Notes: a model not told the origin generated them from the letters alone. Shown: positions 26,602 to 29,226, counted from the first letter of the whole stretch. The stretch is 63,504 nt of DNA, filler included, from Reticulomyxa filosa (GCA_000512085.1; 12 parts of 12 records of this genome joined end to end with filler, not necessarily neighbours in it), one strand, 5' to 3'. Translations and numbers: made by a program.

Positions 26602-26813
26602 GTTTGTTTTTTTTTTTCCATTTATAAATTAATGCCATCGGCAATTTGCATAAATGTTTTTGAATTTTTGTAATTTTTCTTTAAAGTGCGATCAAAAACA
26701 CTACATTAAAANNNNNNNNNNNNNNNNNNNNNNNNNNNNNNNNNNNNNNNNNNNNTTAATTAATTAANNNNNNNNNNNNNNNNNNNNNNNNNNNNNNNNN
26801 NNNNNNNNNNNCG

Positions 26814-27855
26814 GATTCATCAAAAGGTGTATTCATTTCGAATATCGATGTTCAATTCATACACTCAAATCAAACTCCATTGTTGCCAACGGTGTTTGCA
26901 GTGTATGTCGCTTCGTCAAACGAAAACATGTTTGCAAATGGAGTGCTGGTGCACAATGGAAGCGAGCCAGAGCAAAAGACGGCAGTGACCATTGAACCCG
27001 CTATTATCAAAGTGAAGGCCTTGGAGTTCCCCCTCTGTCTCGAATGCCAATATGATGAACTCATGGATTGCTCGCGTGTTGTTAGAGGAATCTACAAATG
27101 CTCTCTTTGTGATCGAAGTAGCCTTCCCGAATCCGTGGTGTATCAATGGTAAACATAAATATGTACGTATATGTATACGTATACGTATATGTATATATGT
27201 ACATATATATCTATCAAAACAGCCCGAAAAACTCAAGGCATATACTGTGTGAAGCATGTGGGAAAGAAACACTGAAATTTGATGAAATGGACGGTTTCAG
27301 TGTACCTTTGATTCGTGATAAACGCTACCCTGTTCGTGTGACCTTGCAATATTACAAGGCCACAAGCAATGGAGTTGTGACGGATGAAGTAATGACAGAA
27401 ATCAAAGCTCAGCTTGACAATTCTCAAAAGCAAGCAGATTTCATTGGCTCTTTGGTCACTGATGGCTTGACTGAAAGACCCACTGATTGGGAGGCCAAAG
27501 AAATTGAGAAAATTGCATCAAGTTTATCTTTCAATTGAATTTTTTACATCACTTTTTTTTAAAACAAAAAAAATGTGTATACGTGTATATAGACAGTGAC
27601 AACGACAAACATGTGAAAGAGGCATTGGTTAATTTGGGATTGTTCAACACTTATTATGAAAGTTTCAAATCCAATGCAGTTGATGATAAAGCATTGTTGG
27701 CTTTGACTGAAAATGATTTGAGTTCATTGTTGCCAAAGATTGGGGATCGTGCCAAATTTCGACAATGGTTGGATGAATACAAGATAATGCGCAAACTCTT
27801 GGATGAAGAAGAACCTGATACCGATTTTGGAGTGAATGATAATATCTTCTTTTAA
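26814..27855 (+). CDS. 3' part of a multidomain protein: Hint (intein-like) C-terminus, Cys-rich zinc-finger-like insert, RDxRYPVRVTLQYYKATSNG domain, SAM domain
   Basis: Open frame from 26814 reads VFISNIDV..VFAVYV..NMFANGVLVHNG. GT..AG introns at 27149-27222 and 27522-27592 keep the frame. The last exon is SAM-like (YYESFKSNAVDDKALLALTENDLSSLLPKIGDRAKF). Confidence 0.75.
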
Positions 27856-29226
27856 CTCCTTTTTTTAAAAAAAAATGGTGTAAGCACTTTTGATTGAAGG
27901 GCAAACTTTACTTTGCAATGTACTTCAAGGCACGTTTGAATGCAATTATTAATTCTAAATTGAAATGCTTTTTTTGACGCTGTAAAACAGACCGAATGTT
28001 TTTTGGCTCATTGATACACTCAAAATGAAATGCTTATCCGTTTATCTCTAATTCGTCGTTATTATTGCAAACTTTTACAAACTTTTTCTGATACATCATT
28101 ACATTAGCACATGATTATCTCAATGAAAATATTACGCAACAAAAATTGTTTCACCTTGATTACAGAATGCACAAGATACTGTAAAAATACTGAGAGTTTT
28201 TTTAAAAAATTAATAACATATTAGCTCAGCGCTATTTCGGAACAACAAAACTGTTTGGTACAGTCATTTAACTACTTTGTCGTAAAGTTGAAGTTAATAC
28301 TCATTTACTAACCAGAACATTGGGTTTGTGTTGTTTACTTTTGTCTCTTTTTAAAAGCAAGCCTTTACACGTTTATTTTTTAAAATAAAAGTGACAACTA
28401 AAAAAGGCTATCGACAGATAATTGCAGCTGATACTATCAAAAAGCTAATATTTATAGTTGTCGAATATAAAGATCGTGACTGACCAGAAACATAGAAGGC
28501 ATACTGAGTAATTTCATCGACGTATACCATACTGAGTTTACCTAGGAATAACAGAAATATGTAAAGATGATTCAGTCATTATTTTGGCATTGAACAAAAC
28601 TTGGAGCGCTTTAAATTCGGACAAAGTATTTGTTGATAGAATGCTAATGTAAAATATTAAAATAATTTCGGAAACATAAATAAATAGACATATACATCAA
28701 AGTGTTTGCATTCTATACATATATGATGCAAATACATTAGTCTATCCTGAAGGCGCACTAGAACAAGTGTATCTTTACGAAGAGGCGATCACATTGCAAA
28801 GACTGACTGGTCAATACTAGTGTCGAAGCATATATTGATTGTAAGAAAATGACGCAATATTGGCCACGTTGACGCGGGTACTGTGGAATGTGTATTGTTA
28901 GTTCAAATCAGCAAAAAAATTTTGATTTGAGATTACGTCATCACCACAATATGCAGCGAATAAAAAGTAAAAATCACTTTGGAAGATGACGCAAACTAAG
29001 TCATTAACTTGCTAAATATGATTTGTTACAAAAGTCTTGGAGTTCACAAAGTGAAAATTATAAAACGTTATTTTTGTTTGTTTGTATTACCTTCAAAAAT
29101 CCTTTTTCTGAAACGATTTTTACTGTNNNNNNNNNNNNNNNNNNNNNNNNNNNNNNNNNNNNNNNNNNNNTTAATTAATTAANNNNNNNNNNNNNNNNNN
29201 NNNNNNNNNNNNNNNNNNNNNNNNNN

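Follow-up and report, generated by a model that had tools for sequence, protein, structure and literature searches.

Can a protein that cuts itself be recognised from the truncated end of a eukaryotic gene, and if so, what does it cut? The question is raised by a locus of the foraminifer Reticulomyxa filosa contained in the window, by which we mean a 63,504-nucleotide stretch of DNA in which 12 parts of 12 records of the draft assembly GCA_000512085.1 are joined end to end with filler. One piece of the window (26812-29126) is a complete 2315-bp R. filosa contig that bears the 3′ part of the nuclear gene RFI_39747. Its in-frame reading from 26814 gives DSSKGVFISNIDVQFIHSNQTPLLPTVFAVYVASSNENMFANGVLVHN and then GSEPEQKTAVTIEPAIIKVKALEFPLCLECQ... 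(GSEPEQ... after the Asn), and an original prediction, made from the DNA alone, took the first of these segments for the C-terminus of an intein-like Hint domain within an intron-containing gene. Sequence comparisons confirm that 26814-26957 encodes the true C-terminal end of a Hint domain. We consider it likely that the complete domain is a mini Hint of about 150 residues and of the bacterial intein-like (BIL) kind, inserted in the linker of a conserved protein family and cutting the HN|G bond through cyclisation of its terminal Asn. The Hint domain probably cuts its host protein in two after translation.

The C-terminal end of a Hint domain

The 48 residues of the Hint tail (blocks F and G; 26814-26957) end in NMFANGVLVHN, with the His at 26952-26954 and the Asn at 26955-26957. 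They are followed by Gly at position +1, Ser at +2 and the remainder of a short linker, GSEPEQKTAVT (26958-26990); these and all other exonic and intronic features described below lie on the plus strand. The predicted scissile junction is HN|G, across which the residues read VLVHNGSEPEQK. The original prediction had the Asn at 26955-26957 and the Gly at 26958-26960, the same codons as in the in-frame translation of 26814-27152. It had also placed the N-terminus of the domain in an assembly gap. The run of N before 26812 is instead a linker at a contig end, and the piece is the whole 2315-bp contig, so that the Hint N-terminus lies beyond the contig and no gap hides sequence.

Exons were searched singly, and P0124, a public spliced paralogue model, was used where a joined sequence was required. 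A scan of the three window exons against Pfam and NCBIfam returned only sub-threshold matches to SAM_1 and to intein_Cterm (TIGR01443; 14.6 bits on the tail, E 0.03, cut-off 15.6) and no Pfam Hint match, and a PDB sequence search with exons A and B gave chance-level matches only. A phmmer search of 1.84 billion representative proteins identified only three real relatives, all from R. filosa. Paralogues are 64-88% identical to the window over the Hint-tail exon (64% for P0002 and P0124 over the shared exon), and two of them pass the Pfam Hint profile PF01079 (gathering score 29.7): P0002 (RFI_37977) with 33.1 bits and its longer cluster-mate P0124 (RFI_21501) with 34.6 bits. Both also align to positions 6-155 of the 155 in Intein_splicing (PF14890), stopping exactly on the His-Asn, with scores of 28.8-30.4 that lie below the gathering score of 35.8. 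On the pretoxin HINT profile (PF07591), the paralogues reach 22.7-24.7 bits, below the gathering score of 27.7. Of the profile families named in the original prediction, Hint is thus passed by the paralogues, but Intein_splicing and pretoxin HINT are sub-threshold, as is the window tail itself.

The TxxH of block B, which the prediction had also expected of a Hint domain, is present in paralogues as TTVNH: the motif reads TTVNH(P/H)IFV in the copies L001/L008 and L002 and TTVNHPIF in P0002/P0124, and the window's own block B lies beyond the contig end. Alignment of four copies (the window, L001, L002 and L003) reveals that NMFANGVLVHNGS is invariant, as is HNGS, with Gly at +1 and Ser at +2 in each. 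After GS, each aligned copy has its own stretch of 4-12 residues, variable in both length and sequence, which indicates a domain boundary at this point.

Among solved structures, the best match of the paralogue Hint domain is BIL2 of Tetrahymena thermophila BUBL1 (6Y75/6TMM; E ~4e-4, ~23 bits), which is matched over the whole domain and ends in FFANGVLAH. Further PDB matches are 8W20, a Hint-bearing protein of 1368 residues, and the Clostridium BIL domain 2LWY. The original prediction had pointed to ciliate BIL-ubiquitin proteins, and BUBL BIL2 indeed proves to be the closest solved relative. The assignment of the Hint fold is by profiles, and the paralogue and Pfam evidence rules out a chance motif. 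With paralogues that pass Pfam Hint and a frame that continues over two introns, the proposal of a Hint C-terminus in an intron-containing eukaryotic gene stands.

A conserved host family with a Hint domain in its linker

What lies beyond the Hint tail had been described as a zinc-finger/unknown-domain/SAM module that the precursor could release. Alignment with relatives shows that it is no independent cargo: the post-Hint sequence corresponds to the C-terminal half of a conserved host family, carrying a zinc-finger insertion that is specific to eukaryotes and, at its end, a SAM-like domain. The supposed unknown domain is the conserved C-terminal core of this family (RYPVRVTLQYYKATSNG...QADFIGSLVTDG..RPTDW; 27323-27490), of which we identified 186 homologues with identities of 48-64%; most are bacterial, 400-520 residues long and devoid of any Pfam domain. 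Bacterial members come from Myxococcota, Cyanobacteria, Verrucomicrobia and others. Members of the family (P0008, P0015, P0044, P0047 and 180 others) begin with a long N-terminal part (...NVTWEDTGR..GPNISDMT...RDxHVLVSAQACFLP...NYQS...VLLIQVPLK), continue through a variable linker and then read SDVEEAVIGHGK.EG.F.EI....ERD.RFPVRVTVQFYKATSNG..., the conserved motifs being NxTWEDTGR, GPNISDMT, VSAQACFLP, IQVPLK and RFPVRVTVQFYKATSNG. Some members have an N-terminus that, by eye, resembles a signal peptide.

The position of the Hint domain within this architecture emerges from a comparison with Hint-less relatives. The window is colinear both with P0007, a Hint-less protein of 405 residues from a Tara metatranscriptome, and with P0058 (L004:19-1172; RFI_24780), a Hint-less R. 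filosa paralogue whose linker is rich in Lys and which has a ZZ-like finger and ends in a SAM-like domain. The post-Hint stretch IEPAIIKV...VVYQ corresponds to P0007 178-231, exon B to 247-333 (BLASTP, E 6e-32) and exon C to 359-405. IEPAIIKV itself (26991-27014) is a host-family beta-strand that aligns with P0007 178-185, with DVEAAIIKV in P0058 and with SDVEEAVI in bacteria, and it is equivalent to the DVEEAVIGHG strand that follows the disordered linker of bacterial members. On the other side of the domain, copy L002 carries a piece of the host N-terminal domain, KLFNEKEDKHVIMPSQCCILLI...FNISLYNYQ, just upstream of its Hint (matching P0007 15-53, E 4e-10). These alignments show that the Hint domain is inserted in the disordered linker of the host family, about 11 residues ahead of the conserved strand, where the linkers of Hint-less relatives are unrelated in sequence. 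P0058 serves here as an 'empty site' comparison; its finger is apparently frameshifted near GYDLCD.

An AlphaFold2 (AF2) model of the bacterial member P0047, made from a 104-sequence alignment, has a predicted local distance difference test score (pLDDT) of 87.3 and a predicted template modelling score (pTM) of 0.87. Its sole low-confidence internal stretch, residues 263-295, is the linker that matches the Hint position. The post-linker strand follows at 296-302, and the core consists of a strand (326-335), a helix (342-357) and a further strand (361-364), the block-mean pLDDT being ~94-97 as far as residue 360. Given the pTM of 0.87, AF2 positions the two host halves relative to each other with confidence. 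A Foldseek search of this model against PDB gave no match at E <= 0.001, a VIA-wide fold search reached a best Z of 4.6 with generic beta-sandwiches, an Atlas fold search returned unnamed viral clusters only, and ESM Atlas searches with exon B and with P0047 gave no usable match. The family has no meaningful match in Pfam, NCBIfam, PADLOC or PHROGs, and the gene neighbourhoods of two bacterial members revealed no conserved context or partner.

Eukaryotic members (including P0007, P0006, P0014 and P0058/L004) contain a Cys-rich finger between the DVEAAI(I/V)KV strand and the RFPVRV core, an insertion that is missing from bacterial members, and in addition a SAM-like tail. The finger gives weak profile matches, to ZZ (PF00569, E 0.27) in the Hint-less P0007 and to C3HC4/zinc-ribbon families in P0124. 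The SAM-like assignment rests on a sub-threshold match of exon C to SAM_1 (PF00536; 19.7 bits, E 0.0011, gathering score 23), with paralogues and Hint-less relatives equally sub-threshold. A 525-residue eukaryotic member found on a Logan contig (P0110; L007:143-1720) has a ubiquitin-like domain (PF00240, 38 bits) in the same linker that holds the Hint domain in R. filosa.

The open frame of RFI_39747 crosses two GT..AG introns and ends in a TAA at 27853-27855. Exon A (26812-27148), truncated at the contig start, encodes the Hint tail, the short linker, the host strand and, on direct reading, the first part of the Cys-rich zinc-finger insertion (CLEC ... C ... CSLC; 27036-27148), and ends in phase 2 (TG|gt); the exon and its donor are also found in L003, L002, L001/L008 and L009. 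Intron 1 (27149-27222, 74 nt, phase 2) contains a TA/TG/TACG microsatellite and splits a Cys codon (TG|C). Exon B (27223-27521) supplies the Cys at the junction, completes the zinc finger with its second half (C-x8-CEAC) and encodes the conserved host core. Intron 2 (27522-27592, 71 nt, phase 1) splits an Asn codon (A|AC), and exon C (27593-27855) encodes the SAM-like domain (~27613-27759) and an acidic tail. Both intron junctions are matched by the spliced paralogue model P0124 (...VIYQCPKDSAHILC... and ...KIASSSDNDKH..., the intron 1 junction being YQ-C-PK), and the intron 2 junction (IAS-N-SDNDKH) is matched by P0005, the public model of the same contig (...EKIASNSDNDKH...). The public annotation of RFI_39747 (P0005, 27146-27538), whose UniRef name is 'SAM domain-containing protein', starts at an ATG inside intron 1 with MYVYVYVYVYVYMYIYIYQNS... 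(MYVYVYVY...) and so misses exon A, that is, the Hint tail and the first zinc-finger half. Downstream of the gene, the 3′ untranslated region and an AT-rich non-coding flank (27856-29126, GC 27-39%) contain no open reading frame longer than 57 residues and no Rfam match. Rfam matches resembling mir-297, mir-1277, mir-466 and other families on both strands of intron 1 were rejected as an artefact of the TA/TG low complexity, being far below the gathering score.

Selection and putative cleavage

Of all parts of the gene, the Hint tail is the most constrained and under the strongest purifying selection. Its ratio of nonsynonymous to synonymous substitution rates (dN/dS) is 0.07 in comparison with L003, at a synonymous divergence (dS) of 0.65, and 0.065 in comparison with L001, at a dS of 1.9. 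Values for other parts of the gene are 0.13 (SAM-like exon), 0.26 (core exon, exon B) and 0.55 (zinc-finger part). Introns are 46-62% identical between copies; for intron 1 and its L003 counterpart the figure is 46%, against 78-88% for the exons. A dN/dS of 0.07 at a dS of 0.65-1.9 reveals long-term selection on the residues of the Hint tail, including the His-Asn.

These conserved residues suggest how the domain could act. After translation, the terminal Asn, aided by the penultimate His, would cyclise to a succinimide and break the HN|G bond; Asn cyclisation of this type breaks the +1 bond without a +1 nucleophile (PMC7765530, PMC8616854). The break would free a C-terminal fragment made up of the GS-linker, the strand, the zinc finger, the core and the SAM-like domain. 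Canonical protein splicing requires Cys, Ser or Thr at +1 (PMC7765530, PMC8616854) and is excluded by the Gly found there. The original prediction had taken the His-Asn followed by Gly as an argument against splicing and in favour of a BIL-like cleaving type, and the Gly, invariant in the four aligned copies, supports this.

The fate of the N-terminal half would depend on the N-terminus of the domain. Should this contain Cys1, a thioester at the N-junction would release or transfer the N-terminal half, with hydrolysis, low-efficiency rejoining (as in type A BIL domains) or, in the manner of BUBL BIL2, handover to a different nucleophile as the possible outcomes. Because the host protein is predicted as one unit (pTM 0.87), the cleaved halves may remain associated as a non-covalent two-chain protein, with the C-terminal half not a free 'cargo'. 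Alternatively, the halves could be rejoined at low efficiency by splicing of the BIL-A type, which needs no +1 nucleophile and is attributed to Dassa 2004 in the summary given by PMC7765530.

The alternative that survives best is that the Hint domain is catalytically dead, or that its copies are pseudogenes, and that the motif is a conserved structural remnant which takes part in no processing. Several observations weigh against an active, cleaving domain. The window fragment by itself stays below every family threshold, and an AF2 model of the Hint domain with the zinc finger, made from a four-sequence alignment, had a pLDDT of 32 and was discarded. No block A Cys or Ser nucleophile is seen in any R. 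filosa copy examined, the contigs stopping short of block A. Only L001/L008 extend to the Hint N-terminus. Neither Cys nor Ser is encoded by the 12 codons that precede VSVNEKETKAIEEIAIGD (VSVNEKE) in these copies, the codons running into a T16 homopolymer where the contig ends. The Val is immediately preceded by an AG that could serve as a splice acceptor, which would put Cys1 on an upstream exon, and the NCBI partial model P0002 has its start at this very point; the N-terminal nucleophile would be either on such an exon or absent.

The other copies provide further points of this kind. Copies are found on five other R. filosa contigs, the longest being RFI_21501/RFI_37977, and the close relatives all lie on short contigs of the draft assembly. 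Copy L009 (RFI_30690) begins on the same base as the window piece, with 97.7% identity in a global alignment, and follows the window nearly base for base to ~28490, except for the intron 1 microsatellite and a 170-nt stretch of its own after 28323; no alignment is found beyond. The common start suggests that the assembler broke at a point of divergence between paralogues. In exon A, L009 lacks single nucleotides opposite window positions 27039 and 27054, and its intron 1 microsatellite differs in length. The contig may be allelic, the product of a recent duplication or an artefact of assembly.

In copy L002 (RFI_35660), the frame is shifted where the host joins the Hint, and four in-frame deletions affect the Hint tail, the zinc finger and the core. 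Within L002:78-747, a fragment of the host N-terminal domain (...DKHVIMPSQCC...LYNYQ) passes straight into the Hint domain at ...YIRTIGDAV in a different frame, and this copy is probably a decayed or rearranged pseudogene. Its public gene model spans the frameshift by an invented intron. L001 and L008 share 99% identity as far as the poly-A run in intron 1, and L001 diverges after exon A: L008 (670-1391) goes on to exons B and C, and L001 (650-2212) to unrelated sequence with a low-complexity open reading frame of 372 residues. L001 is either a chimeric assembly at the homopolymer or a rearranged copy. A proposed homology between the upstream DNA of L008 and L002 (common AAACATGTGA) was not significant, the same score being reached in 140 of 1000 shuffles.

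Part of the copy family may consist of pseudogenes, or of errors of the draft assembly. The frameshifts, deletions and chimeric ends, the lack of a visible N-terminal nucleophile in L001/L008 and the omission of exon A from the public annotation speak for a dead domain. In the window copy, however, all three exons are open and the splice sites intact, and the low dN/dS of the Hint tail extends to the His-Asn at a divergence at which introns and flanks have changed freely. On balance, we consider the loss of activity unlikely and retain the cleaving Hint domain as the preferred reading.

Known Hint systems and the meaning of the locus

A true mini-intein would excise itself and restore an uninterrupted host protein. 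The R. filosa domain shares blocks B, F and G and the terminal His-Asn with canonical mini-inteins, lies, as they do, within a host protein that can be recognised on either side of it, and fits them in its size and in having no endonuclease. It differs from them in that Gly, and not Cys, Ser or Thr, occupies +1 in the window, L001, L002 and L003; in that the site is a variable disordered linker rather than a conserved host motif; and in that several paralogous copies exist in place of one homing site. Since, in addition, the Intein_splicing scores (28.8-30.4) do not reach the gathering score (35.8) and Cys1 is not seen in the available copies, self-excision is very unlikely.

Type A BIL domains offer a closer comparison. 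As far as these domains are summarised in PMC7765530 (citing Amitai 2003 and Dassa 2004), they have a C-terminal His-Asn, do not need a +1 nucleophile and are located in variable regions. The R. filosa Hint agrees in its His-Asn, has Gly at +1 and sits in a variable part of its host, autocleavage is by analogy the expected activity, and the Clostridium BIL structure 2LWY is among its few PDB matches. The hosts of type A domains are hypervariable secreted bacterial proteins, whereas the R. filosa host is eukaryotic, intron-containing and part of a conserved family. The comparison covers the C-terminus, the +1 position and the location of the domain.

Two further classes could be set aside. Hog-type Hint domains are known in protists, including the rhizarian Bigelowiella (Burglin 2008, PMC2362128), and Pfam Hint (PF01079) is the one profile that the paralogues pass above threshold. 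Hog domains, however, are C-terminal, are followed by a sterol/adduct-recognition region and lack a terminal His-Asn, whereas the R. filosa domain has the His-Asn and ~260 more residues after it, and a Hog domain was rejected on this ground. A pretoxin HINT was likewise rejected, with PF07591 below threshold and a downstream part that is the host core and matches no toxin or defence family.

Tetrahymena BUBL1 BIL2 (6Y75, 6TMM) is, like the R. filosa domain, a nuclear-encoded, endonuclease-free Hint of ~150 residues from a eukaryote of the stramenopile-alveolate-rhizarian (SAR) group, and its C-terminus, ...FFANGVLAH(N), resembles the R. filosa ...MFANGVLVHN. It also acts without a canonical +1 nucleophile (PMC8616854). 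BIL2 differs in being flanked on both sides by ubiquitin-like domains: the C-flank of the R. filosa Hint has no ubiquitin match in family scans and aligns to the host family, of which it is the half with the zinc finger and the SAM-like domain, so that a BUBL unit was rejected. A BUBL-like conjugating device, in which a thioester with the N-flank is handed to a lysine or other nucleophile and Asn cyclisation frees the C-flank, would find precedent in this nearest solved relative, which forms isopeptide bonds in that way, and in the ubiquitin-like domain that P0110 of the same host family carries in the same linker, but it is most improbable given the weak similarity to BIL2 (~23 bits), a C-flank that is not ubiquitin-like and the lack of a Cys1 in the available copies. 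By analogy, the R. filosa Hint would work most like a type A BIL or ciliate BUBL BIL domain.

Our literature search identified no paper linking Reticulomyxa with Hint domains; a single paper, a coral comparative-genomics study that we did not read, names both Reticulomyxa and inteins. The eukaryotic nuclear-encoded BIL-type domains found in our literature search are the ciliate BUBL loci, and R. filosa provides a second, independent-looking case, in Rhizaria. With its different host protein, its multiple copies and its strong purifying selection, this case would add to what Hint autoprocessing is known to do in eukaryotes. The chemistry is as expected; the novelty lies in the context that the host provides, in the eukaryotic lineage and in a host family that is still unexplored.

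A bolder extension of the cleaving reading is that the Hint domain is an active, lineage-specific protein scissor or transferase, that Hint-bearing copies have expanded in this foraminifer and that the product is a two-chain or conjugated protein, perhaps by transfer of the N-terminal half as in BUBL BIL2 and Hedgehog; the linker, which in P0110 has taken up a ubiquitin-like domain, would be a possible recurrent site for post-translational regulatory modules. We think this quite unlikely; if true, it would establish BIL-type processing outside ciliates and could help reveal the function of the host family.

The analysis also brings out an uncharacterised family of bacterial and eukaryotic proteins with no Pfam entry and no recognisable solved fold, whose linker tolerates inserted modules as different as a Hint domain, a ubiquitin-like domain and a zinc finger. 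For this family, the Hint domain gives experimenters a way to study how the host protein's two halves cooperate.

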